From contig NC_047078.1 in NCBI RefSeq assembly GCF_902459465.1, positions 8,308,001 through 8,372,000 on the forward strand: a stretch of DNA of 64,000 bases. The letters are read 5' to 3'. Shown here one piece after another: positions 9,001-62,261 of this stretch; the stretch's first letter is position 1; each line of letters opens with the position of its first letter. The position numbers were made by a program, and so were the translations under genes. This DNA comes from Asterias rubens. Taxonomy: Eukaryota. Under the pieces are notes generated by a model that saw nothing but the letters and a program-made list of their open reading frames with translations, had not been told where the DNA came from and did not search any database.

Positions 9001-12000
9001 TGTAGAGCGCCCCCCCCCCTCCTAACCCAAATACCCCAAACAATTCTAGGTGTAATAACTGTCCAGATCAACAAGTGGCACATAAAACATCAACCTTCAG
9101 ACTGAAACCGAAACCCATTAAGATGCACAATAAAATATGCCATTTGATTTAATGGGGGTGGGATGGGTTATGTTATGTACAATTGATATAAACTACCTTC
9201 CATTCCTGGGGTTGATTTCACAAAGAGTTGGGACTAGTCCTAACTTAAGACTAGTATTAACTTCTTGCATAGTCCTAACTTAGGACTTACTAGTCCTAAG
9301 AGATATCAAAAACGTACAGCTAGTCCTAAAATAGGACTAGTAACTCGTCCTAACCCGAGATAAGACTATAGTCATAACTCTTTGTGAAATCCACCCCTAG
9401 GCTGAAAAAGGATAAACAAGGGGCTTTAGTCAAGGCGTTACATAATTCCACCCCTGATCAATTTTAAAAGAAGTTATTAAATTCTTGCATCAAGTCACAG
9501 TTGGACAGTTTTGGTAAAAATGGCATCAAAAATGTTTTTCACAGCGCTCAGGAAAGTACTGAGTAGCTTAATGCTTTAACACACATCGGTGTAGATTTTA
9601 TGGGGAAAACCAAAATAATTTGCTTCAACTTACCTATAACAGTGAGATGAATAAATGTTCCATTTCCAATATCGTCATAGTTTCCATTCAAAACAATGAC
9701 TTGACACTCGTACATTCCATCATCCTCCGCTACTATATCATCAATCTGTAGCGATAAATCATCAAGAAGGCTAGCCCTTCCTTCATACTGGGGGTCGACG
9801 TAAGGTTCATTGGCTAAGAAACCGATGTAGAATGGGAACGGTAGATCCAGGCGACGCCATTGGATGAAGAATAAAACGAAAGGGGCGCTTGGGGAGGGGG
9901 TGGGGACTGATTGATTGCAGGGGAGGATCACAGTCTCACCGGTGCGAACGAAGATTTGTTCCTCCGAAGAATCTGTACACAGAAAAGAAATTTGAGAAAA
10001 AAGATTTAGCTGTTGCAAACTGCTTACCAACCAAAAGGACCTATGATTGTATAAATGCAAACAAAAGTTAATGGCCTGACGTTTCAACCATACATGTCTG
10101 CAGACAGAGTCTTCCTTGAGAAAAAAACAACAACAAAAAAACACATCATTGTTTTCTCATGATGTGAACATAAATTATTTGATTGGCTTATTATAGTCTA
10201 CACTTTGTATTTTATTAAAAAATACAGAGGATGCAACTAATTTATTCTTGCATTAAAACAATAATGATTCTCTTTAGAGCTTACTGATAAAAATCTGCTT
10301 TTTACAATACATTTACTGTAAATTTGTAGCGAGTGTAAAAATTCAAAATTTGATTGAAGTACTTATTCTTCTTCCAAAAAGCACTACAGGGCCCAATTTC
10401 ATAGAGCTACAAAAGGACAAAAAGTAGCTGCATGTAAGCATAACAATATTACGCTTACCGTAGTCTTGGTTCCAAGACCATTGGTGTTGCGCGGTCACAC
10501 TCAACCAACGTTCCAAATATGCACGGCAAAAACTGTACACGCTTGTAATGAATGAACGAACGCTAGCGGGCGCTCTGTTTCTCTGATTTAGATCTCACCA
10601 TGGTCTTGGTTATTTGCAACGACGGGTCTTAACTTTTTTATTGTTTTTCGGCAAATCTCCCCCGACTTTCCGGTGGAGCCAATCAGAGGCTGCGTAGCAG
10701 TTGGCTCATGAATAATAATTAGTGTTGTGCATGCAGTGTACAATGCATGCAGTAAGTGCGTTGCATGACTTTTGCTATACTCTGCATGTGTGTGTGGGTT
10801 TACGTTTTTTATCGGAGTATAATAATATCCAGATCAGTAGGATTTGAAACTTTGCATGGTGGAAATACGATATAGAAAGGTTTGCGGTAACACCAAACCT
10901 TTCTATTAATATCCAGATCCAGACTTCTGCATTGCCATGGTGCAGTTTGAGGACCCAGTTTGAAATGCGATCGTGGCGTTATGCTCCCGACGTGCCAGGG
11001 CCCAATTTCATGAAGCCTGTATTGGCACAACAATTTGCTTAGTTAGCACAAAGTAGTATTGCTTAGCAGAAACTGGTTACCAGCCAATTTTTAATTAAAT
11101 TTGAAATGTTGTAGACTTGTGGCTAGTGCCCAATTATATTTTTGGATAGTAAAGAAATTGTATACAGTATTTTCTGCCAAACAGATAACTGGTGGGTCCT
11201 GTAGTGTTATTCACGGTGAAAGTTGTTTAATCTTGGGGGAAGGAAATCTTGAGGGATTCAAAAGCGTCCCTTTGAGAACGTATTTTGAAACGTAAGCGTA
11301 GCTGCAGATCTTGGAACGTAAGCATAGCTTGACTCGGGATTGAAAGCGTACCTTTTGATATTACAGCGTAACCTAAACGTATCTTGGAGTGTATTAGCGT
11401 AGCTGAGTAGCTGCGTAGCTTGGAACGTTGACATATCTTTTGAAACGTAAGCATATCTTGGAACGTAAACCTAGCTGCGTATCTTGGAACGTAAGCGTAA
11501 CTTGACATAGGATTGAAAGCGTACCTTTTGATATTATAGCGTAACTTCAAGGAACGTAAGTAGATCTTGGAATGTAAACAGAGCGCAGAGCTGAGTAGCT
11601 GCGACTATAGTCGGGTCATAAATTCCACTAGTTGCCCAATTTAATCATTACCTCAAAAATAACTCTTCATTCACAGAATTAAAAAATAATACTTTGTTTG
11701 ACAAATTATGCTTTGAGGGAATTTTGTTTTATCATTATTTTTATTTCAACCTTTTATAAAAAATTCTCATAATTTGTTTAAGCTACTCACACAACAATGT
11801 CAATATAACAAAATGCGGAATTCATACGTTTTGACATCATCAAAATTACCTGAAAAATCATAACAAAAAGAAATTAGGGGGCCATGAAACAAAATGGAGC
11901 AATTGGAACGTTGCGATCATAAGAAACAACGGATTAGACACCCGCAAGCTGGGAGTTATAGCGCCCGGGATTTAACACCTCCAACCCCCACGAGACACGG

Positions 12001-29273: not shown

Positions 29274-29410
29274 NNNNNNNNNNNNNNNNNNNNNNNNNNN
29301 NNNNNNNNNNNNNNNNNNNNNNNNNNNNNNNNNNNNNNNNNNNNNNNNNNNNNNNNNNNNNNNNNNNNNNNNNNNNNNNNNNNNNNNNNNNNNNNNNNNN
29401 NNNNNNNNNN
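29274..29410. other. Assembly gap (137 N) flanked by (AAAC)n-like low-complexity repeat
   Basis: Directly visible. Confidence 0.99.
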
Positions 29411-30119: not shown

Positions 30120-38128
<8,009 letters not shown>

Positions 38129-38479: not shown

Positions 38480-40064
38480 ATGAGGCATGGTAAGATCTAC
38501 CGTCGGATGGCTGGAGGGCCAAAACAACGAATAAATTTACTTCGACATTTGGTGACTACGCTTGTGAAGTTTGAACGATTGGAGGCGCCCTATGGAAAGG
38601 CACATGAAACTCAGAAATATGCAGAGAGGGTAAAGCATTTTTATATATTTCTATAAATATTATTTGACATTTTTCAAAATAATGTACTTGTAACACTCTG
38701 GGAAAACATCCTTTATCCTACCAACACATTTTAATTAATTTTTACCAAAAATATTATCTCATTTTTAAAATTAAAATTTTTGATTTGACTTGGTTGAGTA
38801 AATAAAATACTATTTTTAATTATTTTTATTGCATATTATTTATAATTTATATTATTATTTACTGTATTACAATGAAACAGTTTTGATACAGTTAAAAACC
38901 TGGTCTATCATGTCCATACTCTGCCTGTGTCATGTATGGATTCCATTTGATTCACGTTGGTCACTTGATGCCATTTGCATTTCTTGAGTCAAGATCCCTT
39001 CCCAACACTCATCAGGGAGGTGTGATCATACCCAAACATATGATCAAGTACTTGCCCACAATGCAATGGCACAGAAATTACTTTCCAATTAAAATAAATA
39101 CACTGTAGATAGCTTACCGTGAAATAATAAACTTTTGTTGTTGTTTACTTGTTTACATATGTTGTTTACCTGTTGTTTCCAGCTGATTAATATTGCCAAG
39201 AGAGGAGACACCGACGAAGAGGCGATGAAGATTGCAGATTTTTGGCTCTCGGTAAGTTGGTTGTTATTAAAGGAGTTATCTGTTACCTAAATCTTTAAAA
39301 ATTATCCCCATGTTTTGAACCCAAGTGATTCAATAATGCTAAGCAACCATGCTTAGCTGGCCTGGCACACCTATTTATTTTTATCAGAGTCCAACTGATA
39401 GTTGAGTAACTGTATGGATAGTTGCAGCTATCAGGCTGGCTCAGTAGTTTCTTCCCCGCATTTCACCTCCGAGGACTCGAGTTCGATTCCTGATAAACCA
39501 AAGCCTTTCATGTGGATTAGGGTTTCAGTCCGTACCTGACTGCGTGGTGTTTTTCCTCCAACATCTAAATTGAACATTTCTTCATTGTCTTCTCTACAAT
39601 AAGTTGGTATGATCATAATAGTTTATCACTGAGTAAATTTTTTTATGATTCTGCAGGACAAGAGACAAGTACACAAGCTCTTCAAAGTTCTAGCGCCTCG
39701 CTTCGCAAGCCGACAGAGCAACTACACGCAACTCCATCGAGTACCCGGCTACGAAGGAGAGAGAAATATCGCAATGGCGTTCTTAGAATACTGTGGCAAC
39801 CCGTACCCACCTCTTCAGCCAATCAAAAAGAAGAACCCAAATTGGATTTTGAATATTCTCATCCGGGAAGGGATAAAAGATTTGAAAGCAACTGGTGTCC
39901 TCCAAGGAGCTGGTAACCATTTTAAGTCCGTTGCATCGAACAATGGGTCCACAGAACTGAAAGGACTTGAAACAGCTCTAGGAGATTTGCAACTTGGAGT
40001 GTCACAAGAGGGCGCTGTTGATGATAAGCAGGTTAATGTGCCAAAGGATGGCACTCCTGTATGA
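38480..40064 (+). CDS. MRPL17: 39S mitochondrial ribosomal protein L17 (bL17m), complete, 3 exons, 208 aa
   Basis: Exons 38480-38629, 39183-39251, 39657-40064, all phase 0, GT-AG. MRHG...R..LLRHLVTTLVKFERLEAPYGKAHETQKYAERLI, KLFKVLAPRF..R...YT and AMAFLEY.GNP are bL17 hallmarks. Confidence 0.95.
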
Positions 40065-44476: not shown

Positions 44477-45218
44477 TTAAAGGCAGTGGACACTATTGGT
44501 ATTTTACTCAAAATAATTGTTAGCATAAAACCTTACTTGGTAACGAGTAATGGGGAGAGGTTGATAGTATAAAGCATTGTGAGAAACGGCTCCCTCTGAA
44601 GTAACATATAGTTTTCGAGAAAGAAGTAATTTTCTACGAATTTGAATTCGAGATCTCAGAATTAGATTTTGATCGGTCCCGAAACCAAGCATCTGAAAAC
44701 ACAACTTCAACGACAAACTTAGCTCAAATTTGCACAGGTTTGTTATTTTATGCATGTTGAAATATACACCAAGTGAGAAAACTGGTCTTTGTCAATTACC
44801 AACAGTGACTGTCAAGTGTCTTTAAAGACAGTGGGCACTATTGGTTGGAAATTGTCAAAGACCAGTCCTCTCACTTGGTGTTTATCAACATATGCATAAC
44901 ATAACAAACCTGTGAAAATTTGAGCTCGATTGGTCGTCGGAGTTGCGAGATAATTATGAAAGAAAAACACACCCTTGTCACACGAAGTTATGTACTTTTA
45001 GATGGTTGATTTCGAGACCTTAAAATTCTAAACTTGAGGTCTCGAAATCAAATTCCTCGAAATCAAAATTACTTCTTTCTCGTAAACTATGTCACTTCAG
45101 AGGGAGCTGTTTCTCACAATGTTTTATACTATCAACCTCTCCCCATTACTCGTAATCAAGAAAGGTTTTATGATAATAATTATTTCCAGTAATTACCAAT
45201 AGTGTCCACTGCCTTTAA
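44477..45218. mobile_element. Two family A MITEs in inverted orientation sharing one TTAA
   Basis: TTAA|AGGCAGTGGACAC at 44477; junction GTGTCT|TTAA|AGACAG at 44822-44825; right end GTGTCCACTGCCT|TTAA at 45218. TTAA sites with AG..CT termini fit Kolobok/T2-type MITEs. Confidence 0.88.
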
Positions 45219-46857: not shown

Positions 46858-49800
46858 CTATGACTCAGGGTTAGGTGCTAATGGTTTAGTGTTAATCACA
46901 ATATTAGAGTTGTTATTAGTCCCACTACTCTTCCCAAGTTTAGAGAGTTGTAAATACTCTGTGTTGTGATCGTGAGATCTGAAGTCGGACTGAGAGGTGA
47001 CGCCATTGTTGCTGCTCCGAGCAGCGAAGTCACGGCACCGGTGATACGATGTGCTGTCCGGTCGCTTTCCCTCCCGGTCTGGAGCCGTCACACACGGACA
47101 ACAGGAAAAAACATGACGGAACTCCTTTCTGAATCGAGCTGCAAAGAGAAAAGGAGAAAAAGATAATCAGAACTATTGTATATCTGTGTTACGACGTCAG
47201 AACAATCTGTTTGATTAGATGATTTGTTTGCGGTACGTATGATACACATGTAATGATAATCTCTTTCTGAGTTTGTGTGCTTCTAAAAAGAATTCACCTT
47301 AGGTTTCAACTCGACGTTTCAATCAGTATGCTTTCATCGTCTTCTGGAGAAAACTAGACTCTGCTGAAGCTTTCAGAACCACCCCATTAAGAGATTATCA
47401 TTACATGGTGTTACCGCAAACTTTTATCGTATGTCCACCATGCAAAGTTTCAAGTCCTACTGATTAGATGATCTTCCCGCGAAAGTGAACTGGTATGGTA
47501 AACCCCCACAAGGGAATATAAACACCAAGCTTACAACAGCCAATCTATCTCATTACAAACATTCTCTTAACAACTATGATTATGAATTGCACAAAAACAA
47601 GAAATTGTGATTCAGTACCTATGACGACAATACTTATAATTGTAGTCAAATTGTAAAATAAGCGGTTAGCTTGGTGGATTCGAACCCACAACCTTGTGAT
47701 TGCAAGTCATGCAGTCTTACCATGCAGTCATGATTCTGCGCACCAGGCAAAGGGAATCAAACAAGGCAAGGACAAAATCTCGTGTGTGAAGCAAAATCAC
47801 GTGCGACAGCAAAATCAAGTCAATCTTATTCACACCAGAGGCATCTTAACAATTCCACGCGGTCTTTTGAGAGATTAGACGTTCTTCCATGAAAAGATGA
47901 ATTTTTAAATATCCAAATGACTTAGAGATCAATAGACGACAGACAGAATGGCGAATTTCAAACTGATTTAGATGCTTCATTTGAAGCGACACGCCGCCTT
48001 GGGCGTGATCTAACGCCCAATATAGCCCATGTAACCGAAGGTGTAAATCAATGATCACGGTAGGCGATGAGTCTTGATTGTTTGTCACTGGCAATTCAGA
48101 TCAAACGGCTATTGCATGAATGTTTGGCCTATACTTACACCACCAAAAGTAGTCTGGTTTCAGACCTTGTTGTGTTGGTTCGATACTGTTTAAACGTTGG
48201 ATAGTATTACAAGTGTACAAACAGTGAATGAGACAACTATTTTCACAAGACATCCGAGAACAGCTGCCTGTGGGTTTAAGGTATCCCCAACCAATCCCCG
48301 ACGGCTGTCCGAACAATAAAACCAAAATCATTTCTAAATGCCAATGAGGTTTTAACACAGCAAATAGCAATGTCATGAAAATACGTTTTTATATGCTAAA
48401 ATAATTTTCGTCTCATGATCACTGAGACGAAAATTATTTTCATGACATTGTTTTACTCATTTCTTAAAAACTACAATACCTCAGAAAGTAGTATTTTTAA
48501 GGTAAGCTTTCTGCTATCATAATCTTCAAACTGTGTAATGTAAACCTGTGTACATTGTGTCTTTTTGTCCTACAAAACGTACAAAAACCAGTTAATGGCG
48601 TTAGGCTTACATCCTCTCCGACATTTAGATTTCCATTCAGATGGAAAACATACATAAAGCAACTGTTTATTAATGAATACTGATGACCATGCAGCTGCAT
48701 ATTAAAGCCAAGTAGTTTCAGCAAAAAAAACTTACTTGGCAGAATTCCCTAAAATGCTTTTATGAAATTGGGCACAAATCTTTGCAAATAACTGCTCATT
48801 ATTCGCAAACGTTTAATGCTAATATCTTTGCAATTGTGACATTTGCTAAGATATTTTAGCCATCGCAAATATATTTTTGTTTATGTTTTCGTGTTACCCG
48901 TTTGTCTTGTCTCTTTGTTTGTAGTGTGTATGTATGTCTGTGTATGGCTTAATCTGACAGCCTCATCCTTAATTTGGTTGACATAGGTTAAATATTTCCC
49001 CTCTATGCTCTGATGTATGTAAAATATGACATTCGTCATCTTGAGAAGAGCAGTGTGAAATAAATACTGGCGTTGAATTGAATCTTATTTTCCACGAATT
49101 GTGGATTTGCGATTTGTATGACATCCCTTTAGGGCCACAATACAATTACACTTTTGTTCAGTTCACGTACAATACATCATATGAATATGTAGACGTTTCA
49201 CTAAGCCGTTATTTATGCATTCTGTGCGTATGAAGTTTTACAATTAATAAGGCTCATCAGAATTTGTGTGTAGTTCATTATTAGAATTGACAGTTGCATG
49301 AACTTCGGAGTTGAATCGAAGTCTAGCAACCAGAGGACATTGACGCCGATCGATGGTTTATGTTTTTTCCTTGTTTGCTCACATTAAGCCACGTCCAGTT
49401 TCATACGATTCGATATCACTTATTTTGGCCAGCACTCTGTGATATACGTGACTAAAATCTACAAGAAAAAGTCTTGTGAGTTTTATCCGAGTTTGAAACC
49501 TACTTCTAAAGAAGGGTTACACGACTGTTTCATGAGCTGGCCGCTAAGGCATGTATACGGCTGTATTATGTTTTTATGTAAGTTTTATCCATTGACCCTA
49601 AATTTTGAAATCTACATGCCGCGTAAAAAGGTTCAGCGACTGTTTCATGAACTGACCATCTAGGTACGTATGCTGCCTGTCTCTATGTAAGTTTTAACAT
49701 AGTTTGCAATGTTTTAAACTTACAGGTTTCGAAAAAGACTGCTCCTTCTATGCCCAATTTCACAGAGCTGTTGAGCAGAAAATATTGCTTAGCAAATATC

Positions 49801-52800
49801 TGCAAAGCAGAAAAGAGCAGGATACCAGTCAAAAATTGTACATGTGACATGGTAGTTTGGCTTGTAACCCTGTTCTGGTAAGCGAATATTTGTTTTGTGT
49901 TGCGGCTCTAAATGAATTGGGCCCTGAACTGACCGTCGAGGTAGGTATACGGTTGTTTTATGTCTTAAAACTTACCACTCAAGAAGTTGTAGATAACTGG
50001 ATTGATGACGTTGTTTAGGTAAGCCATGAAATGAGCAATCAGGAATGAGACATGGAGAGCAACCCTCCCACTGGATTCGGTGTTCTCAGATGCCTTCATA
50101 TTATTGAAACCATCCATGTATCTGAAATAAAACGTCAATAAAAACACACACACATTAAAACTAAAAAGGAGTGTAAAAATCACTGGAGAGCTGTCGATAA
50201 TTAATTACCACTAATTTACGTAAACGGTGAGCCGGTGTGTCACTTCAAAGCGATGGTGAGCCGGTGTGTCACTTCAAAGCGATGGGTGTACGGGCTGCCC
50301 CTCCGCCACCTGGACACGCGTGAACTAAAGACAGTGTGGCCAAGTGTAGAGGGAATGCGTAAGTCTCGGATGAAAAAGCATGTTTGTAAAGTGAGGAGTT
50401 ATTTTAAGTTTGAATAAACAATTTCCTCTGTAGAAAAGAACAACAACAAAACTGCAAAAAACTTGCATGCAGGTATACCTCAATCTCTTTTGATATGAGC
50501 ATTGGTTCGGAAAAGATCTTCAGTCTCCTCCTACTTTTGTATCTAGTCAAACTGCTTGTTAAAATCATAACTGGACTTTTTACATTCATGAAACCAAATC
50601 TCTAAAATGTCTATCCTTTAAAGGCAGTGAATACTATTGGTAATTACTCAAAATAATTATTAGAATAAAACCTTTCTTGGTAAAGAGTAATGGGGAGAGG
50701 TTGATGGTATAAAACATAGTGAGAAACGGCACCCTCTGAAGTGCCATAGTTTACGAGAAAGAAGTAATTTTCCACGAATTTGATTTCGAGACCTCAGATT
50801 TAGAACTTGAGGTCTCGAAATCAACCATCTAAACGCACACAACTTCGTGTGACAAGGGTGTTTTTTTCTTTCATTATTATCTCGCAAGTTCGATGACCGA
50901 TTGAGCTAAAATTTTCACAGGTTTGTTATTTTATGCATATGTTGAGATACACCAACTGTGAAGGCTAGTCTTTGACAATTACCAATTGTGTCCACTGCCC
51001 TTAAAATCATAACTGCACTTTTTACATTCATGAAACCAAATCTGTAAAATTTCTATCCTTTAATGTACTTTTTGTATGATTGAAACCATTCTCTTTATTA
51101 ATAATAATTTTTTCCCCTCATCATAATAAACAGAAGTATCAAGTTCATTTTGAATAAGCCTCTTTCTTGCCCCTGGCTAAGGTTTCAGAGTCCATGATGA
51201 AAAGTTCATCGCATAATACAAATTGTTTCCACAAAAAGAACATCTCTGAGCGATCGTATTTTGCTTGTTCTGTGCTAAGAGATTTGCCCAAAGCCGATCT
51301 ATGGCGTGATTGTTAACTGTTTATGCAACGAAATTCACCCTCGTTTCCTCGGCCTTCCGTGCTGGAGGTATTCAGAAATCGCTGATGTTTAATTAAGGTG
51401 TTTAACGTTATGCGGGGTCACGTTCACGCTTTGGGATCGAGGTGGTAATCTTACAGGGTGATACACCTTTGTAGAATTTCATCATCTTTAAATTTTGGAA
51501 AAAGAGCCTTTCAAGAGAGAACAACAATTTATATTAATTTCTTTTCAATCACAATATTGTCTGGTACCCGAAAAAGCAGCGACAGCGATAGTTGTAGCTA
51601 TCATTTCATGCATAGGAACCAGACTATTATTTGCCTTACAGCCTCAGATTGATGTATTGCTGCTCAGTTATGAAGATATTTAGTGTGATGACGCATTATC
51701 ACCATGAAAGTGGCACGAAGTTACATATAATAATAAAAATAATATGACACTTGTAAAGCGCAAACATATCCACCTAACAAGTAGGCGCTCAAGTCGCGAC
51801 AAAGAAAAACAATGAACAACAACAAGATATTTAAATTAAACTGTGTTGTTGTAGGCAATTACCATGAGGTGGGTTTTGAGGGTAGTTTTAAAGGAGTTGA
51901 GGGATGAAATAGAGCGAATGTTGTGAGGACGGCTGTTCCCAAAGACGAGGGGCAGCAATACGGAAAGATCTATCTCCCCAGGAGCGATAAGATCTCCGTA
52001 CAGTCAGAAGATGTTGACTTGCTGAACGAAGACCAGATCGACTGGGGTTATAAGGCCTGATGAGTACGCACTTTATGTAATCCACCATTACATATACATA
52101 AACTGACAAACCTGAGTTTGAGATCTATGACTTGTGTACATCATACAAACTTGAGGGCGCTGTCGTGCAAACGTGAAAATAAATGAGCTTTAAATGAGCT
52201 GTAAAAAAAAAACACTCTTGTCACACGAAGTTGTGTGCGTTTAGATCGTTGATTTCGAGACCCCACGTTCTAAATCTGAGGCCTTTATACAATCAACCTC
52301 TCCATATTATTACTCGTCAACAAGAAAGATTTTCTAATTATTTTGAGTAATTACCAATAGTGTCCATTGCCTTTAAAGAAACATTACAGAAATGGGATTA
52401 AAAATACCGCTTATATCACAGATTTACACAAAGTCTAATGATGACGATAGTAGAAAACATTTCTGAAATAGTTTTATTTGATGTAATTGTATTCATGAAT
52501 CTATAAGTCAAGCAAAATAGAACTCAAACTCATGTTTGTCAGTTTATGTTTAACGGTGGATTACATAAAGTGCTTACACTGCCAGCAACCGTTTTGTTAC
52601 CACCAACCAATGTTCCTTTGAGCAACGGGCCATATAGCCGCGTCATATCTCGTTATAGTTTGCGTCCAAAGCTAATCGATAGAAAGCATATTCTTTACTG
52701 TAAGAGGGTCTCAAATACCACAGGAAAAACAAAATAACAAACTTATAATATCAGCATGAATTGAGAAGCTGTCCCTTTGAAAAAATATTCCTTGGCCACA

Positions 52801-55800
52801 TAAAGTGCACGACTTACAAAAACAGTCCGTTCTTTCATCGCTACGGTGTAGCCTTACTAGCCAGAAGGCATTTACGAATGTATATCTCACTTCAATAGTC
52901 ATACCAGTGTCTTGAATCCTTTTGTCTGCTCTGACGGCTTGAAAAGAGCCTATGACATCTCTAATTTATATACATCATTCCTATTGTTGTAAAAAGGAAA
53001 CGAAATTTGAATGAAATGGTCTGGTTTCGAGTCAAGATAAAGCGGACTTAAAGGTCACCAAAAAATTAAATCAAATTCCTCGTAGATTTATGGTTTTTTT
53101 TTTCATCTTCGTTGTAGGCCCTAATAGAATACACAGTTTTTAGTCGTCCATATTATTTCCAAGTATTAAAAAAATGATTTTCAAGGACCCAAACAACGAG
53201 TGCATTGTAGCGTACATTGATAAGTTACTTAGTAGTTTTCTTATTATCGTTTTTAAGACACAGGCTATAATGTAAAGTAATGTAAAATTTTCTATTCTAC
53301 AGTAAGTTGCAAAGTCGATGACCAATAATTGAGCCAAATTTTTCACAGGTTAATTATTTTATGCATAACTTTAAAGGGAAGGTACACGTTTGGTATGTAA
53401 TTACTCAAAACAAATATTGACTTAAAAACTGACTTGGTAACTAGCATTGGAGAGCTGTTGTTGGAAACGACTCCCTCTGAAGTAACGTAGTTTTTGAGAA
53501 AGAGTTAATTTCTCACTAAAATAATAGAAGACTTCTAGCTCGAAGTATTTTATTCCTATCTGAAAGCACACAGATTCGTCCAACAATGGTGTTTTTTCTT
53601 TCATCATTTTTTTCCCAACTCCGATGACCAATTGAGCTAAAATTTTCACAGATTTGTTATTTTATGCATATGATGAGATACACCAAGTGAGAACACTTGT
53701 CTTTGACAATTACCAACAGTGTACCTTCCCTGTAAGGTACACCAAGTGAGAGTAGGCCTGGTTTTGACAATACAAAACGTGTCAAGTGCCTTTAAGGAGT
53801 GAGTTGTAAACGACAGACCAGATACACATAATGCCCAACTAAACTCCAAACACCGTAACCCGATCACAGTACGCCTAGCGTTTCAGTCTCCCGGGGATCG
53901 CGTCGATACACCCGCGTGTTGACTCAACTGCCCTCGGTGATGCCTCTTCACACATTCTCGTAGTTTTTTCCATTGGACCTTCGACGTGGCCCAGTGAAAG
54001 AGTCCAATCGAATCACGAATACAACGAAAATACTTCGCCACATCCATGTTGTTTTTATAACCATTTAATGTAAACTAAATCGAGGCTTGGACAAAAACAG
54101 CTCTAAAAAGGAACATCGATATTCGCTGTACAAACTTATTGGAATGTCCAGTATCCAATAGTGATGTACAAGGTAGACATTCATTGTAGAAACATAAGGG
54201 AATGTCCAATATCCAATATAGATGTACATGGAAGACATTCCCTATAAACACGTCGGGATTATCCAATATCCAATATTGATGTACGAAGTAGACATTCACT
54301 GTACAAACCTATGCGAATGTTGTCCAATATTTGATATCTATCGAAAAAGTAACATCGACAATTCTCGCTGTACAAACATTATTTGAATGTCCGATGTCAA
54401 ATATGCAACTAACGTACTTTTACTACTTTCTTAAGATATCCATAATATGCATGTATTTACCATCCACCTCTTATGATCCAGCGTGTTAACACTAGCGACT
54501 GCCCATCGACCCGCCCTAATGCGCACGATCGGCACACGATCTGTCTCATAAAGCTTTATCAATGTGGATAAAAACATGGTACCAGTCTAGACCCATGCAG
54601 TGAGCCCCAACAATGACGTCAAAGCAACTAGAACGCACTGGGGTCAGACCTGGGTCGATCCGGGAAGCTAATCGAAAGCACCGGGGTCAAACCTGGGTCG
54701 AACCGGGGTAGTTTATTGAGCGTACTTGGGTAAGAACTGGATAGACCCGGGGAGGCTAATCAAACGCGCTGGGGTCAGACCTGGGTCGATCCGGGGAAGC
54801 TAATCGAAAGCACCGGGGTCAAACCTGGGTCGAACCGGGGTAGCTTATTGAGCGTACTTGGGTAAGAACTGGATCGACCCGGGGAGGCTAATCGAACGCA
54901 CTGGGGTTAAACCTGGGTCAAGGTAGGGTAGCTAATCGATCATACTTGAGTCAGACCTGGTAACCCGGGCAAGCTAATCAAAAGCACCCATAATAATAGA
55001 TAAGACAATAATGGTATGAGTGCAAACATGTATTTTGAACTTCCAAGACTTGCACTCGTCTGTCCCCCGCGCGCTCTGCAGAAGCGATCGACCCCTTGCC
55101 ATTTTCCAAGGAATCATATCAAGTTTATAGAAACCGTTTTATAGCACGTTTAGTACGTTTAGTATTAGAGGGTACGCTTTGATGACTTTGTCACGCACGG
55201 ATAATACATTTCAACGAACTCACTATGATATGAAAATATCAAAGGACATTGGCAAGGACATTGACAGCATATTAACGGTACCATAGTCACGAATGGCCTT
55301 CTGCTGGTTAGCTGCGTGTCCACGACAAATATTTGTGACCCCGGTCTGGTGGTGGTAGAATTAGCGTTGAGTCCAGGGCCGCGTCAAGGACACTTCTACC
55401 ATGTAAGCAATAAACAAGTTTTCTGACAACACTAGCGATTGTGTGCTTGCTTCGCATGCAAGTTGTGTTTTCAAACAGTGATTCTGAAACCATACTATCC
55501 ATTTTTTTTCACGAGGAATATGAATTTTTCAGCAAGTGGAGATTATAATGGGGATGGTAGAGTGGCTCAACATTTGGCTGTCATGGCCGCCATTGATAAA
55601 ATAACCTTTCGTTCAGATGATGTGGTACTGGACGTTGGCTGTGGTACGGGGGACGAGACAATTGCAATAGCTGCTAAAGTCAAACGTATTACAGGTGAGT
55701 TCAAAAATCGTCATTATTATTAAAGTCACCTGGAAGTGGTATTTTTTCAAAATAAAGCTTTTGTCACAAATATATGTGTTTTGATGAGTGGAATGTGAAT

Positions 55801-58800
55801 AAACAGTTAACTAAGGTTTTAAAAAATCAGTTCTTATGTTATTTACAAACTTGAGAGTAGACCCCGACCCGAGAGGGCGCTGTTCGTGACGTCAATCGAG
55901 GCAGACTTTGCCTGTAATGCGTAGAGTAAACACAATTGCAAAGTACATGGACGTACATTGGACGTACATGTACTTTGCACGTGTGTTTACTATACGCATT
56001 GCAGGCAAAGTCTGCCTCGATTTATGTCACAAAAAGGGTAGGCGGAGTCAGCCCCCCAAACAACTTTATATATGTTTTAAACATATAAATCGGACAAACA
56101 ATTACTAAAAAAATTGTTTTATTGTTCGTAAGCATATACTGTTATGTTTGAAAGAAAAAAAAAAATTCCAGGTGACTTTAAAGTATGAGGTTTTTTATTT
56201 ATTTCATTTATTAATTTCACAGTAGGAACGACAAAGAAAACACACACACACAAAGGAGAGAAAACAATAAAAGTAGCAGCCCTCATGGATTTAAAAAAAG
56301 TTTGTTACTGACAAAGACTAGTATTCTCATTTGTCGCATCCCAACATAATGCACAAAATCACAAATCTGTGACAATTTGGACTCAATGTCATCGAAGTTG
56401 CAAGAGAAAACTGAAAGATAATCAAAGATCATATTTATGTTAAAGGCAACTGGATACTTTTAGTTATATCTGTGAAAATTTGGACTCAATTGGTCATCGA
56501 AGTTGCAAGAGAAAACCGAATGGAAATCAAAAATATGTTTATGTTAAAGGCACTGTACACCTTTGGTAAATTGTCAAAAACTAGATTCTCACCAAATACA
56601 CCATGTTGTTTCCCAACATGCATACAAATAACACATCTGTGAAAGTTTTAACTACATGGGTCATCGAAGTTGCAAAAGTATAATAAAAGAAAAAACACCC
56701 TTGTTGCGTGCTTTCAGATAAATAAAAGGATTCGGGCATGAAGTCTTATTGAGTGAGATATTAAGATTTTGTATTCATTTCCTTACGGGCACCGAAAAGG
56801 TCTTCACGGGGAGTTCTAAAGACGGGGTAGCTCCATTAGGAACTTTGTGTACAAAGTCTCTGGCAGTTTCTTAACTTCATAGCAAAAAGAAAGAACAACA
56901 TATTTATCAAAAACTGTGTTCTCGGTGTATTGTTCTCGGTGTTTTGTTCCAGAGGTTTTACACACGATCATTAATGATTTTAAGATTGTTAAATACCTTT
57001 TTGATTATCGATTTGTACAGAAAATATGGAACTGTTATCTAAAATAACTGTATTGGGCTCATAATTGGTTTTGTGCTAACGGAACGTTCTTAGCAGATTT
57101 TCCATTTTATAAAGCAGTTTACCGTAAGCAAAGGTAAATGCTGGATAACCTGCGGTTAGCACATTAGTGACGTAAGCGCAAATCCATGGTGAACGTGCCA
57201 TGCGAGCCTAGAATTTGTGTGCTTTCTTGAGACATTGTGTTGAAATAAGTTCATGCTTACGTACATTTGCTTACGGGTAAACAGCTTTATGAAATTGGGC
57301 CCTTGGGTGTAATATACACTCGTATGGCACCTACTAACCCCGATGTTTTTAAATACACTATCCTCAGGTGTTGATCTTTCTGTTGAAATGATAGCCGAAG
57401 CACGAGCGAAAAGCTCGCCGTCAAATGTATCATTTTTTGTGGGAGACGCACTCACTGTCGGTGATAACCCCAAATGGCGGGAAACATTCGATAAAGTTGT
57501 CAGTTTTCTGGTTTTACACTGGATTCAAGACAAACGCACGGCTTTGACGAGCATTCTCGCCTGCCTTAAACCACAAGGGGAAGCTTTGCTCATCGTGGAT
57601 ACCGACACACCAATTTTCTTTGATGCGTCAAGATTTCTACAAAGCCATGACAAGTGGGGTAAATATGTTAAGGTAAATATTCGTTGTCTTTGTTATGACA
57701 TACGTGCTTATCACTTATAAAGTATACCGCCCTCTGTTGACACTAACAAGATGACCGCCTTCTTGGAAACCACAAGATTAAGTATGGTTTGTTTATTTAA
57801 AAAAATAACTTTTTTTCTGTCATGTTCAATGAAGGACTTCATGGTCCCTATGTACCAATTGAAGCAGTCTGTGGCGGAAACGCAAGAAATGATGACATCT
57901 TTGGGCTGGGTTAACTGCAAGTGTGAAATCGTAACCCATGAGATTTGCATGGACGAAGTACAAGCAAAATGTAAGTATTAAAGATTCTTCATGAACAAAG
58001 AAAACAAGCAAAGAAAAAATAACACACTTTATGAAGAAACAAGAAACCCTAAATTCACCAAAGGAGATAAAGGCCGATAACAACTAATTCCAGTCGAGTA
58101 ATGGACAAATCAGATGATTTAAAGGTCGAGTTAAGGCCGAGTCACACTGCAGCGATAACGAAAACGATAACGATCACGTGAAGGCCGAGTCACACTGCAG
58201 CGATAACGAAAACGATAACGATCACGACGCAAAGAGAACGCATTGTATTGGTTGAATTGCTCCACGCAGAATACGCACACGCTCATTCAACCAATAGAAT
58301 GCGTTTCTGCCTTTAAGGTAATAAGTATTCAGTGGTAGTGACTAAAAACCCAATACGCGAAACGTTTACATTTTGGCGCTTCACTATTTTTTCCTGACTC
58401 ACACAACTGAATAAGCCCACCAACTTTGCACAGGTTTGTTTCGGAGGTATCATTGATCACACAAAACATGAACAACTGCTGCGATTTCGAGACATCTTCC
58501 ATCACCATTTCCAATTTTATCTTTTTCTTTCTTCAGTGTTCTTCAAAACATTGCTGCAGCAAACAAACATGATACCCGAGGACTACACGGACGAGTACCT
58601 GACAGATCTGTTGAACTTTGCATCGTCACGCGTCGAAAATAAAGACCAAGATTGCTTCTTTAAATTTACAGCACAACTTAGTATTATCCATGCTTTCAAG
58701 TAGTGCTTGCAAAACTTCAATATGAAAAGTGAATGTTTTTTCTTTCTGATAAATGTTGCTGTGTTAATTAAACCTCTGACGTTTCCAGTAATGATTAAAA

Positions 58801-60448
58801 CACTGGACGCTATTGGTAATTACTAAACATAATTGTTAGCATTAACAAAAACTCTTACTTGGTATAACGAGTAGTGGTAAACTGTTGATAGTATAACACA
58901 TTGTGAGAAACTGCTCCCTCTGAAGTATCGTAGTTTTGAGAAAGAGATGATTTCTCACTCAAATAATAAAAGACTTCAGCCCCGAGATACAATCTGTCCA
59001 AAGTTGGAATCTACCCCAAATTAGAATCTGCCCAAAGTGAAGTCTATCCCATTTAGGAATGTGTTGGTTATCACCTGATTGTGTTAGAAACGTGCGTAGA
59101 AAGTTTACAAATAGAAAGTAAATCTGTCCCAAATCGGAATACACTCAAGTTATAATTTGCCAAACATGGAACATACCCTAGGTTTGAAGCTGACCCAAAT
59201 TGGAATGTAGCCCGCGTTAGAATCTGTCTGGTACTAACCTGATTGTGTTTAGAACATGCGTAGGAAGTTTACAAATAGCAAACATGACAACCACCACTAT
59301 CAACATCCGGGCTACTTTACGTCTGGATTCCAGCTGTGTCTCTGTTGACTAATAGGAGAAGAGGAAAACATTGAATATTCATGAAGTGGTGTCACATCAT
59401 AAATGGATACTTTGGAACGCTAGGTGGCAGCAGACTTACCATATAAATGTCCATTGTTTATGTCGTTCTGATCATGCGCATATCACCGAGAACGATGTAT
59501 TTACCTGGTAAGTGTGCTGATACCTAGTGTCACAAAAATCCCCTATTGTTTAACATTAAAGACAATATTATTATACACTGTCACATTATTTGTTAGATAT
59601 GACAGGAACTTCTGTCCCCGATATGGCAAATGATGTACAAACTTCTTCTGATAGCGCCCTCTTTTGAAACCTCCTCCTCAAGCCCATGTTAGTTTTCCAT
59701 TGAGGGACCGAATGTCAGTAACAAAAAGCTATTTCGTTAGCTTTTTTGTTGGCCATGGTACAGTGCAGGACAGACAAAACAAAACTATACGCAAGACATA
59801 ACACCATTTATTTCCAGATGAGTTTGGTCAATGGTTTTTAGCGAGCATTCCATGGGGTAGCTATGGAGGATTGCAGGTTACTCAGATTCCAAGAACTGAC
59901 TCCGCGGTAGTGCAGTTAATTACGATCTTATAAGCTAAAGCAGTAGTCAATTTTCTATACTTTCCGCCCGGGTGGTAGTTAAATAGCAGGAGAGTTCTTT
60001 TTAGAACTGTGGAGTCTCAGAAACATCCAATACATCTACTCGGCGGTTGTAGAATAAAGAAAGACAGTTCTCTAAGAACAAACTATGCCTGGCAAGTAGA
60101 TACACACATGGTGTTACCACAAAAATTACTCAGTTTCATTTTGAGAGACAGGAGCTGTAGTTTTGGTGATTACTTCAACATGTGAAAGCAGCTATCAATC
60201 CGTAGCTGTAGCCGTAGCCGTAGCCGCTAAATCAGAAACTGCCTTACCTTATTCATAGTGGGTTTAGTCTGTCCCGCTGATCGCCCTCCCAACGCAGGTC
60301 TGTGCGATTCATCAGTCGGGATACCAGACCACAGTCTCAGGCAGACTCGTGCATACGCTACGGCCATGATCAACAGCGGGATTACATAGGACACAACCAC
60401 TTTGCTGATGTGGTAGACTTTCTGCCAGATGGTGCCCTTCCAAGCTTT
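46858..60448 (-). CDS. Orexin/allatotropin-type neuropeptide GPCR (class A), 5'-partial: TM5 to C-terminus, 4 exons in window
   Basis: Exons 60448-60248 (KAW..VYHISKVVVSYVIPLLIMAVAYARVCLRLWSGIP, TM5), 59348-59239 (STETQLESRRKVARMLIVVVVMFAICKLPTHVLNTIR, TM6; missing from the ORF track), 50121-49976 (..HFMAYLNNVINPVIYNFLS, TM7), 47138-46858 (ARFRKEFRHVFSCC.. to stop). Phases 0/2/1 are consistent. QLxSRRK, IYNFLS and FRxEF are typical of orexin/allatotropin receptors. I found no TM1-4 exons in 60449-64000. Confidence 0.82.
47735..48380 (-). mobile_element. Decayed DIRS/Ngaro-like retrotransposon remnant (RNase H region, possible)
   Basis: LFGQPSGIGWGYL resembles the LFTDASxxGWGAxL motif; the rest is interrupted by stops and frameshifts. 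Confidence 0.35.
50618..51004. mobile_element. Full-length family A MITE flanked by 63-bp direct repeats
   Basis: TTAA|AGGCAGTGAATACTATTGG ... CCAATTGTGTCCACTGCCC|TTAA. Flanks 50559-50621 and 51001-51063 differ at 3 positions. Confidence 0.9.
51727..52085 (-). mobile_element. L2-type LINE 3' end
   Basis: YNPSRSGLRSASQHLLTV..WGDRSFRIAAPRLW, followed by an L2-like 3' UTR and (ATT)n-like tail. Confidence 0.8.
53290..53794. mobile_element. Family A MITE variant (53371-53735) nested in an older family A copy
   Basis: Inner TTAA|AGGGAAGGTACAC ... GTGTACCTTCCCT|GTAA; the outer copy resumes and ends GTCAAGTGCCT|TTAA at 53794. Confidence 0.7.
54110..54400. repeat. Degenerate 57-58-bp minisatellite (~4.5 units)
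   Basis: GACATTC recurs at 54176, 54234 and 54291; core GAATGTCCAATATCCAATA. Confidence 0.85.
54635..54987. repeat. GC-rich ~44-bp tandem repeat with a 131-bp three-monomer higher-order unit
   Basis: GGGGTCAGACCTGGGTCGATCC at 54640 and 54771; about 8 monomers. Confidence 0.9.
55520..58703 (+). CDS. Class I SAM-dependent methyltransferase, juvenile hormone acid O-methyltransferase (JHAMT)-like, complete, 4 exons, 260 aa, nested antisense in a GPCR intron
   Basis: Exons 55520-55694, 57368-57672, 57835-57970, 58537-58703 total 783 nt including TAG. SAM motif VLDVGCGTG, GVDLSVEMI, FDKVVSFLVLHWIQD, LKPQGEALL, PIF and KWGKY match the JHAMT family pattern. The exon 3 acceptor is AAG at 57832-57834; an in-frame CAG alternative lies at 57865-57867. 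Confidence 0.85.
55720..56181. mobile_element. Kolobok-like MITE (TTAA TSD, AGTCACCTGGAA TIR) in methyltransferase intron 1
   Basis: TTAA|AGTCACCTGGAA ... TTCCAGGTGACT|TTAA, with an internal ~130-bp foldback at 55894-56022. Confidence 0.88.
58131..58295. mobile_element. Truncated MITE with its 48-bp 5' end tandemly duplicated
   Basis: AAGGCCGAGTCACACTGCAGCGATAACGAAAACGATAACGATCACG at 58133 and 58181. Confidence 0.65.
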
Positions 60449-60458
60449 CTGTAATTTC

Positions 60459-60797
60459 AAAATCAAAATCAAAATAAAAATCAAAACCAGACTTAGAATC
60501 AGACTTAGAATCAGACTTTAGAATCAGAATCAGAATCAGAATCAGAATCAGAATCAGAATCAGAATCAGAATCAGAATCAGAATCAGAAGCAAAATCAAA
60601 ATCAAAATCAAAATCAAAATCAAGATTAAAATCAAAATCAGGATCAAGATCAAGATCAAAATTAAAGTTAAAATTAAAATTAAAATTAAAATTAAAATCA
60701 AAATCTAAATTAAAATTAAAAACCAAATCAAAATCAAAATAGAAATCAAAATTGAAATCGAAAATCGAAATCAAAATCGGAATCGAAATCAAATCAA
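60459..60797. repeat. Compound hexamer microsatellite (AAAATC/AGAATC/AAAATT)n
   Basis: About 11 pure AGAATC units at 60520-60585 inside degenerate AAAATC arrays, abutting a GPCR splice acceptor. Confidence 0.95.
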
Positions 60798-61884: not shown

Positions 61885-62261
61885 TTAAAGACACTGGATA
61901 CTATTAGTAATTGTCCAGTCTTCTCATTGGTGTATCTCAACATGTGCATAAAATAACAAACCTGTGACAATTTGCGCTCAATTGGTCGCCGAAGTTGCGA
62001 GATAATAATGGAAGTAAAAACACCGTGTCACACGAAGTTGTGTGCAGTTAGATGGTTGGTTTCGAGTCCTCAATTTCTAAATCTGAGGTACCGTAATTAA
62101 ATTCATGGAAAATTACTTCTTTCTCGAAAACTGCGTCACTTTAGAGGGAGCGTTTCCCACAATGTTGTATACTATCAACCTCTCCCCGTTACTCGTTACC
62201 AAGTGAGGTTTTATGCTGATAATTATTTTGAGTAATTACCAATAGTGTTCACTGCCTTTTA
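61885..62261. mobile_element. Full-length family A MITE
   Basis: TTAA|AGACACTGGATACTATTAG ... CCAATAGTGTTCACTGCCT|TTTA. Confidence 0.85.

Follow-up and report, generated by a model that had tools for sequence, protein, structure and literature searches.

The window, a stretch of 64,000 nt from Asterias rubens, carries on its minus strand the last four coding exons of a GPCR, from TM5 to the C-terminus, and, wholly within the intron that divides its TM6 exon from its TM7 exon and on the opposite strand, a four-exon methyltransferase gene (CDS 55520-58703; Table 1), the only methyltransferase copy in the window. The host intron is long relative to the two adjoining receptor introns (9,117 nt vs 899 and 2,837 nt), the stop-free pieces of the receptor each span at most 102 amino acids, and its TM1-4 exons fall outside the window. 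The methyltransferase exons sum to 783 nt, corresponding to 260 codons followed by TAG, and its introns are all of the GT...AG type; GT-AG splice sites are found throughout both genes. A complete four-exon methyltransferase lying antisense in a 9.1-kb TM6-TM7 intron had already been described in the first-pass annotation, which splice sites and RNA contigs confirm to the base. Repeats of about 390 bp in the window are common to A. rubens chromosomes at 83-93% identity.

Table 1. Exons and associated features of the receptor gene and of the methyltransferase gene nested within it (window coordinates).
Feature	Position	Strand	Basis
Receptor exon, TM5 and first part of intracellular loop 3	60248..60448	-	67 codons; splice sites
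Receptor exon, end of loop 3 and TM6 (FAICKLP, Lys at 6.48)	59239..59348	-	Splice sites; RNA contig
Receptor exon, extracellular loop 3 and TM7 (NPVIYNFLS)	49976..50121	-	Splice sites
Receptor last coding exon, helix 8 (ARFRKEFRHVFSCC), C-terminal tail and stop	46858..47138	-	Acceptor and frame
Host intron, TM6-TM7, 9,117 nt	50122..59238	-	Donor GT 59238-59237, acceptor AG 50123-50122
Methyltransferase exon 1, from Met1 into codon 59 (first base); carries Q17 and, as SAM motif I, VLDVGCGTG	55520..55694	+	ORF, GT donor
Methyltransferase exon 2, residues 59-160; FDKVVSFLVLHW with W110, LKPQGEALL	57368..57672	+	AG/GT sites, Methyltransf_11, RNA contigs
Methyltransferase exon 3, residues 161-206, start of C-terminal lid	57835..57970	+	AG/GTAAGT sites; aligns with starfish paralogues
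Methyltransferase exon 4, stop TAG 58701-58703	58537..58703	+	AG acceptor; RNA contig; aligns with paralogue C-termini
Methyltransferase 3' UTR, minimum extent	58704..58842	+	RNA contig X1 record 6 (58641-58842)

Both genes are spliced in RNA-labelled runs. In run X1, record 1 joins methyltransferase exons 1 and 2 (55691 to 57365, with 3 ambiguous bases), contigs of records 1 and 2 cover exon 2, and record 5 starts exactly at 58537, the first base of exon 4; the TM6 exon of the receptor is present in spliced form in a 2,691-nt RNA contig from run X2. Among the matches listed, the read depth of the methyltransferase RNA is low (7-10), and run X2 yields spliced receptor mRNA at a depth of 45 alongside a single enzyme contig, unspliced, at a depth of 3.6; the balance of the two transcripts is opposite in the two runs, contig depth being a poor gauge of expression. 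ATTAAA signals occur at 58767 and 58794 and RNA extends to 58842, and the whole methyltransferase mRNA therefore probably lies within the receptor intron. Between its end and the TM6 exon there are only about 400-535 bp, and an unspliced RNA contig (58951-59413) spans that exon. A retroposed origin of the nested gene was ruled out because it keeps the intron positions of its family.

Several lines of sequence comparison place the encoded enzyme. Exon 2 alone matches Pfam Methyltransf_11 (1.4e-10, 42 bits vs a cut-off of 21.2) and has an insect JHAMT as its best solved match (6.6e-12), while exon 1, whose MNFSAS.DY start is shared with starfish paralogues, gives weak partial matches to Methyltransf_31 and Methyltransf_25 under their cut-offs. 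A profile of the window pieces and starfish paralogues aligns with the JHAMT 9un4 over positions 8-262 of 262 (8.5e-29), and the same profile matches non-JHAMT enzymes over their core only, at 1e-16 or weaker. SAM motif I (VLDVGCGTG) is present, and the conserved D38, G40, G42, G44, D61, D85 and G129 are retained. By these features the predicted protein is a class I SAM-dependent methyltransferase and, in agreement with the family named in the first-pass annotation, JHAMT-like in the broad sense, including a C-terminal substrate lid. Q17 and W110 are found at the positions given there, and the proposed equivalence of W110 with the insect Trp holds, as it aligns with the Trp of LHW/LQW in insect JHAMT-clade proteins. 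Q17 is a tentative counterpart of the insect Gln: the latter lies four columns earlier in both HMMER and MAFFT alignments; counted back from the GxGxG strand, Q17 is at most one residue from the amphioxus Gln, itself aligned with the insect one. In Aedes JHAMT, Gln14 and Trp120 are proposed to bind the substrate carboxylate. Of the 73 columns conserved to 90% or more in a set of 20 starfish paralogues, the window copy retains 62, among them all SAM-motif residues; L169, L231 and F233 replace three Trp, and Q128 a Gly, kept by nearly all of these paralogues.

The family is expanded in starfish, with at least 5 JHAMT-like copies in Asterias (at least 4 annotated paralogues), at least 14 in Patiria and at least 6 in Acanthaster, spread over many chromosomes and in tandem arrays, and named 'juvenile hormone acid O-methyltransferase-like' by NCBI. 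The window methyltransferase is absent among the annotated proteins searched, and its orthologues elsewhere may therefore be under-annotated as well; our gene model apparently represents an unannotated starfish JHAMT-like paralogue. In a 115-row tree its protein falls in a starfish-only clade (SH-aLRT 98), itself nested among deuterostome sequences; a sister relation of this deuterostome group to the insect clade has weak support (82-87). The phylogeny called for in the first-pass annotation thus goes against it on this point: the window protein lies outside the arthropod/insect JHAMT clade and is not placed as an orthologue of arthropod JHAMT proper. Within the starfish clade it branches early and on a long branch (0.62 vs a median of 0.2), and no 1:1 orthologue was found in Patiria or Acanthaster. 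P0001 is the closest relative of exon 2. Acanthaster P0190, the nearest copy in that species (61% identity, 134 aa), was rejected as an orthologue since it groups with P0184, P0009 and P0166 in a careful tree; it sits at a scaffold end with its downstream side beyond the scaffold, and the closest Acanthaster relatives of the window copy sit in different genomic contexts. The 5 changes listed for the organism B variant of the enzyme comprise 3 non-synonymous and 2 synonymous ones.

The receptor exons encoding TM5, TM6 and TM7 give partial Pfam 7tm_1 matches that follow the order of the profile (positions 147-260); none of the three reaches the cut-off by itself, and the TM5 match is weak and partial. 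The TM7 exon carries NPVIY, a feature of rhodopsin-family 7TM receptors. Orexin receptors are the top solved-structure matches for the TM6 exon (4.8e-7) and for the TM7 exon (4.4e-7, next family 0.03). Since NK1R scores highest for both the TM5 exon and the helix 8/tail piece, the solved-structure search alone is ambiguous, and, with orexin and NK1R receptors about equal in summed bits piece by piece, the receptor call was not rested on solved structures. As a sole homologue query the TM5 exon returned no candidate, ESM Atlas look-ups with the TM5 and TM7 pieces reached generic 7tm_1 clusters only, and the texts and supplements of PMC9400282, PMC13548532, PMC8428848 and PMC9759900 held no usable receptor peptide motifs. 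The assignment comes from the published alignment of S. purpuratus and S. kowalevskii orexin-type receptors with protostome allatotropin receptors (PMC10987541 supplement 3), where the TM5 exon (AYARVCLRLWSGIP) agrees with the S. purpuratus receptor, the TM6 exon is identical to S. purpuratus OX at 26 of 39 residues (by-eye count), and SA(K/R)FRKEF is common to the window receptor, the S. kowalevskii receptor and lophotrochozoan allatotropin receptors. The family signature NP.IYNF.S(G/A)(K/R)FR.EF is present together with the TM5-ICL3 and TM6 motifs, closest to known orexin/allatotropin members. For the part from TM5 to the C-terminus, the assignment to orexin/allatotropin-type neuropeptide receptors made in the first-pass annotation holds on exon matches and motifs, the TM5, TM6 and TM7-helix 8 signatures being those of the sea-urchin and acorn-worm receptors.

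Conservation of the nesting was assessed from the methyltransferase side, at 12 loci of other family members, drawn from Asterias, Patiria, Acanthaster, Lytechinus and assembly GCA_014845345.1. No 7tm_1 host gene was found at any of these 12 loci in the five species, and tblastn with the receptor exons gave no match within 10 kb at loci L001-L011; at locus L012 the GPCR check was made by gene list alone. A conserved but unannotated nested copy may exist elsewhere.

These data most likely describe a real but ordinary nested pair, in which one copy of a duplicating family happened to end up within a long intron. Such chance nesting from an expanded family, raised in the first-pass annotation as the alternative to its own proposal, fits best, and to an independent, transcribed JHAMT-like gene that arrived by chance in an orexin-type host we assign a probability of roughly 0.75. 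An old duplicate of a repeatedly duplicating and dispersing family would have entered the intron, and the two genes would function as independent transcription units, with coupling limited to possible incidental antisense interference. The enzyme, a predicted 260-aa cytosolic methyltransferase, would O-methylate a small, probably hydrophobic carboxylic acid, which need not be farnesoic acid, and appears to have lost three substrate-lid Trp kept in other starfish copies.

The proposal that the first-pass annotation had favoured, an ancient or echinoderm-wide module in which a JHAMT-like gene is kept in the receptor gene so that signalling and terpenoid carboxyl-methylation are co-regulated, appears highly improbable. 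Both genes do belong to the families it named and are transcribed, and the early branching of the window copy means that the arrangement could be old; however, the enzyme is a long-branch member of a starfish-only paralogue clade outside that of the insect JHAMTs, the Patiria and Acanthaster searches yielded no orthologue of it, none of the 12 other loci in five species ties the family to a GPCR, and the spliced receptor mRNA in run X2 is accompanied, among the matches listed, by that sole unspliced enzyme contig (depth 45 vs 3.6). Moreover, nested antisense genes are common in metazoans and usually functionally unrelated, and an action of allatotropin on juvenile hormone is not known outside insects. 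We give equally little credence to an old, at least asteroid-wide, maintained nesting in which an early paralogue with a remodelled lid and a receptor with Lys 6.48 would be reciprocally regulated around a methyl-ester signal.

Coupling restricted to Asterias and close relatives, where a recent nesting would let transcription of one gene dampen or gate the other, is unlikely, if the least so of the alternatives: the proximity of the enzyme mRNA end to the TM6 exon, the unspliced contig across that exon and the opposite transcript balance in the two runs (among the matches listed) are compatible with it, but contig depth gauges expression poorly, and pre-mRNA or carried-over DNA could account for the unspliced contig. 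Somewhat less probable still is that the nested copy has lost, or is losing, its function but continues to be transcribed. The long terminal branch, the replacement of near-universal Trp and Gly residues by L169, L231, F233 and Q128, the absence among annotated proteins, the low read depth among the matches listed and the 3 to 2 ratio of non-synonymous to synonymous changes among the 5 listed for organism B would all suit decay, whereas the intact 260-codon frame in four canonical exons at family intron positions, the correctly spliced transcripts, and the retention of all SAM-binding motifs and of 62/73 conserved columns argue against it.

A conserved physical link between the receptor and a JHAMT-like gene would hint that neuropeptides controlled sesquiterpenoid methylation before insects arose, and would offer a concrete handle on the disputed methyl farnesoate-like hormones of deuterostomes. 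The evidence points the opposite way, to a family that duplicates heavily and disperses, one copy of which lies within a long intron. What is gained is a curated model of that apparently unannotated paralogue, the extent of the JHAMT-like expansion in starfish, and an orexin-type receptor paralogue whose toggle position is occupied by an unusual Lys.

Compared with insect JHAMTs of solved structure (9un4, 9xyq/9xyo, 7ebs/7ec0/7ejb), the window enzyme is of the same length class (260 vs 267-293 aa), can be aligned end to end including the C-terminal lid, and has SAM motif I and the SF..LHW Trp, but it is about 27-31% identical to insect-clade representatives and belongs to a separate deuterostome group, within a starfish-only clade; juvenile hormone is not known from echinoderms. 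That a deuterostome carries a JHAMT-family enzyme, as the first-pass annotation had it, is correct, but is not new, since passages of PMC9181382 and PMC10015273 already describe JHAMT-like genes in three groups, namely echinoderms, hemichordates and amphioxus. To this published family the window gene adds one more starfish sequence, a divergent one on a long branch, and the passages of the two papers that matched our search terms describe neither the starfish expansion nor nesting in a receptor gene. The receptor shares AY.RVC.RLWSGIP, KSTE.QL.SRRKVA.MLIVVVV.FAIC and INP.IYNF.SA.FR with S. purpuratus and S. kowalevskii orexin-type and allatotropin receptors, its by-eye identity over three segments being 53-67% to the S. 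purpuratus and S. kowalevskii receptors, 52% to human OX2 and 39% to NPFFR; it departs from known orexin-type/allatotropin receptors, which have Tyr or Phe at 6.48, in its Lys at that position. As an arrangement, the locus resembles other intron-hosted, opposite-strand genes of metazoans, in that the long intron of an unrelated host gene houses an entire gene equipped with a start, introns and poly(A) signals of its own; against such nested genes nothing about it is unusual, and only the pairing of these two particular families invites a story.

The first-pass annotation had placed a complete four-exon methyltransferase gene on the opposite strand within the TM6-TM7 intron of a GPCR gene, and this arrangement is borne out by splice sites and by contigs from two public runs labelled RNA (X1 and X2), which confirm both gene models. 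The joined methyltransferase exons comprise 783 nt and 260 codons ending in TAG, with GT...AG boundaries in all three introns. One X1 contig contains the exon 1-exon 2 junction, another has its first base exactly at 58537, the start of exon 4, and a third ends at 58842, shortly beyond ATTAAA motifs at 58767 and 58794 on the 3' side of the gene. On the receptor side, the TM6 exon is spliced into a 2,691-nt X2 contig; the introns beside the host intron measure 899 and 2,837 nt, and the window does not contain the exons for TM1-4. Between the enzyme's ATG and the TM7 exon there are 5.4 kb, and between its stop codon and the TM6 exon 535 bp. The window copy was absent from the matched database proteins, though the query carried its own exon words, and may be unannotated.

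Features of the window and their coordinates
Feature	Coordinates	Strand	Remark
Methyltransferase exon 1	55520-55694	+	joined frame
Methyltransferase exon 2	57368-57672	+	joined frame
Methyltransferase exon 3	57835-57970	+	joined frame
Methyltransferase exon 4	58537-58703	+	joined frame
Receptor TM5 exon	60448-60248	-	canonical splice sites
Receptor TM6 exon	59348-59239	-	canonical splice sites
Receptor TM7 exon	50121-49976	-	canonical splice sites
Receptor helix 8 and tail exon	47138-46858	-	canonical splice sites
Receptor TM6-TM7 (host) intron	50122-59238	-	9,117 nt
Minisatellite	54631-54987		period 44/132
Minisatellite	54121-54320		period 58
TCAAAA hexamer microsatellite	60457-60797		340 bp, ~57 copies
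Dispersed repeat, ~390 bp	50618-51005, 44821-45218, 61885-62259, 30317-30645		SINE/MITE-like
Stop-free ORF	30629-31525	+	299 aa
N run	29274-29410
GC-rich, strongly GC-skewed segment	32001-34000
Ig V-set domain exon	9551-10144	-	1.1e-8
ORF with Ribosomal_L17 domain	39645-40061	+	6.7e-8; probably mitochondrial L17

The sequence is eukaryotic, with a GC content of about 0.37-0.42. Within the host intron, two minisatellites lie 0.5-1.4 kb 5' of the start codon of the nested gene, and one copy of the dispersed repeat family is also found there. This family is shared at 83-93% identity with the two A. rubens chromosome loci L003/L004, in keeping with an A. rubens origin of the sequence. The hexamer microsatellite adjoins the TM5 exon acceptor and produces long ILILIL/FDFDF pseudo-ORFs. 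The stop-free ORF, which lacks a Pfam match and by eye resembles the C-terminal end of ORF2 in a non-LTR retrotransposon, adjoins both the N run and the GC-rich segment.

Searches of solved structures, conducted exon by exon, were ambiguous for the receptor: orexin receptors were the top matches of the TM6 and TM7 exons (for TM7, 4e-7 versus 0.03 for the next family), and the substance-P receptor scored highest for the TM5 and helix 8 pieces. We compared the receptor segments by eye with a published transmembrane alignment of orexin/allatotropin receptors (PMC10987541 supplement 3). The TM5 segment IWQKVYH...AYARVCLRLWSGIP and the TM6 segment KSTETQLESRRKVARMLIVVVVMFAIC... are identical to S. 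purpuratus OX at 20/38 and 26/39 positions, respectively, and the TM6 segment from S9 matches human OX2 at 16/31. The TM7-helix 8 segment AHFMAYLNNVINPVIYNFLSARFRKEFRHVF shares 19 of 31 positions with S. kowalevskii OX, 17 of 31 with S. purpuratus OX and 12 of 31 with human NPFFR. Together with a YNF.SA(K/R)FR signature, which is that of the ambulacrarian and lophotrochozoan orexin/allatotropin-type members, this alignment settles, at the level of sequence, the orexin/allatotropin type originally assigned to the GPCR.

For the enzyme, exon 2 alone scores above the Pfam Methyltransf_11 cut-off and has insect JHAMTs as its best solved-structure relatives (6.6e-12). A profile built from the translations of the four exons and six starfish paralogues (A1) aligns with positions 8-262 of 262 of the JHAMT 9un4 at 8.5e-29, the next JHAMTs following at about 1e-20 and other methyltransferases matching over the Rossmann core only. 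By these matches the enzyme is JHAMT-like in fold and family. Q17 and W110 are indeed at the positions claimed for them in the 260-aa protein, W110 aligning with the LHW/LQW Trp of insects and Q17 being a possible counterpart of JHAMT Gln14. In a 115-row tree, insect rows named by cluster look-ups (Eurygaster JHAMT, Musca, Culicoides, Gryllus, Aquatica, Gonioctena) form one clade (support 95), and deuterostome rows split by phylum (Ptychodera; crinoid and sea urchin; amphioxus; starfish) into clades joined weakly to one another and to insects (82-87). The window protein, whose closest proteins are all from starfish, falls within a starfish-only clade (98). The JHAMT assignment thus holds as family-level likeness but does not extend to orthology, in a strict sense, with the JHAMT of insects.

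A careful tree of the starfish clade resolves the window copy as an early long branch (0.62 versus a median of 0.2) and contains no orthologue of it; identity to every full-length paralogue is at most 49%. The Acanthaster fragment P0190 was considered as an orthologue, with 61% identity over 134 aa, yet groups elsewhere in that tree. Among columns at least 90% conserved in 20 starfish paralogues, 62 of 73 are kept by the window copy, including all SAM motifs. In its C-terminal half, Q128, L169, L231 and F233 replace the G, W, W and W of 19-20 of the 20 paralogues, which would mean that the substrate lid has been remodelled or that constraint has relaxed.

The family is expanded in starfish, with at least 14 annotated copies on at least seven chromosomes in Patiria miniata, tandem arrays among them, at least six copies in Acanthaster, and four annotated copies plus that of the window in Asterias. 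Patiria copies of 82-89% identity reside on at least six chromosomes (P0157, P0158, P0159, P0160, P0180, P0186, P0208; loci L007, L008). The gene model of P0208 ('ryncolin-2-like') fuses a family first exon to a fibrinogen-C gene, and L008 holds an additional, inverted exon 1 copy at 7106-7282. Together these features suggest recent dispersal. In the unannotated assembly GCA_014845345.1, an Asterias relative by tree, locus L001 (contig JACSEG010000407.1, 5919-7042) encodes a close relative of the A. rubens paralogue P0185. In this L001 copy, which has a CD20-like gene on its upstream side, exons 2 and 3 appear fused, since one tblastn match spans residues 59-187.

We compared the nesting from the enzyme side, at twelve other family loci: L001, A. 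rubens L003/L004 and L005, P. miniata L006, L007 and L008, A. planci L002, L009, L010 and L012, and Lytechinus variegatus L011. Their neighbours are subtilase, ARID/RFX, CutC, HLH, RNase P p30, fibrinogen-C, CYTH, Arf, CD20, FMN dehydrogenase and RFWD3 genes, or more methyltransferase copies. A 7tm_1 host gene is present at 0 of 12, and the translations of the four receptor exons, used as tblastn queries, gave no match at E<0.1 in L001-L011, L012 being judged by gene list only. Other genomic contexts are also seen for P0190 and P0189, the nearest relatives in Acanthaster, the downstream side of P0190 being cut by a scaffold end. Animal genomes commonly carry antisense genes within long introns, as a rule without relation to the host gene. 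From these observations, the receptor-enzyme pairing is best read as the chance landing of one old duplicate from a dispersing family.

The ancient or co-regulated module initially proposed is not supported by this comparison: with no such host at the other loci, and with the link between allatotropin and juvenile hormone being an insect trait, a conserved functional receptor-enzyme module is very improbable. A lineage-specific antisense interaction between the receptor and the nested enzyme is unlikely, if less remote. An X1 contig (58951-59413, depth 13) covers the TM6 exon unspliced, together with the ends of the introns on either side, and could derive from pre-mRNA of the receptor, from carried-over DNA or from transcription reading through from the nested gene. 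The balance of receptor and enzyme transcripts is opposite in the two RNA runs, contig depth being unsound as an expression measure.

Part of the initial inference had already been published. Two earlier papers report JHAMT-like genes from echinoderms, hemichordates and amphioxus and discuss whether they might provide a route to methyl farnesoate (PMC9181382; PMC10015273). What is added here is the nested pair of genes, one more JHAMT-like paralogue from starfish and a paralogue among the orexin-type receptors. A spliced RNA contig carries the TM6 exon of the latter with a single mismatch, and its unusual residue is therefore not an assembly slip: the receptor has Lys at the 6.48 'toggle' (FAICKLP), a position taken by Tyr or Phe in every orexin/allatotropin receptor of the published alignment.
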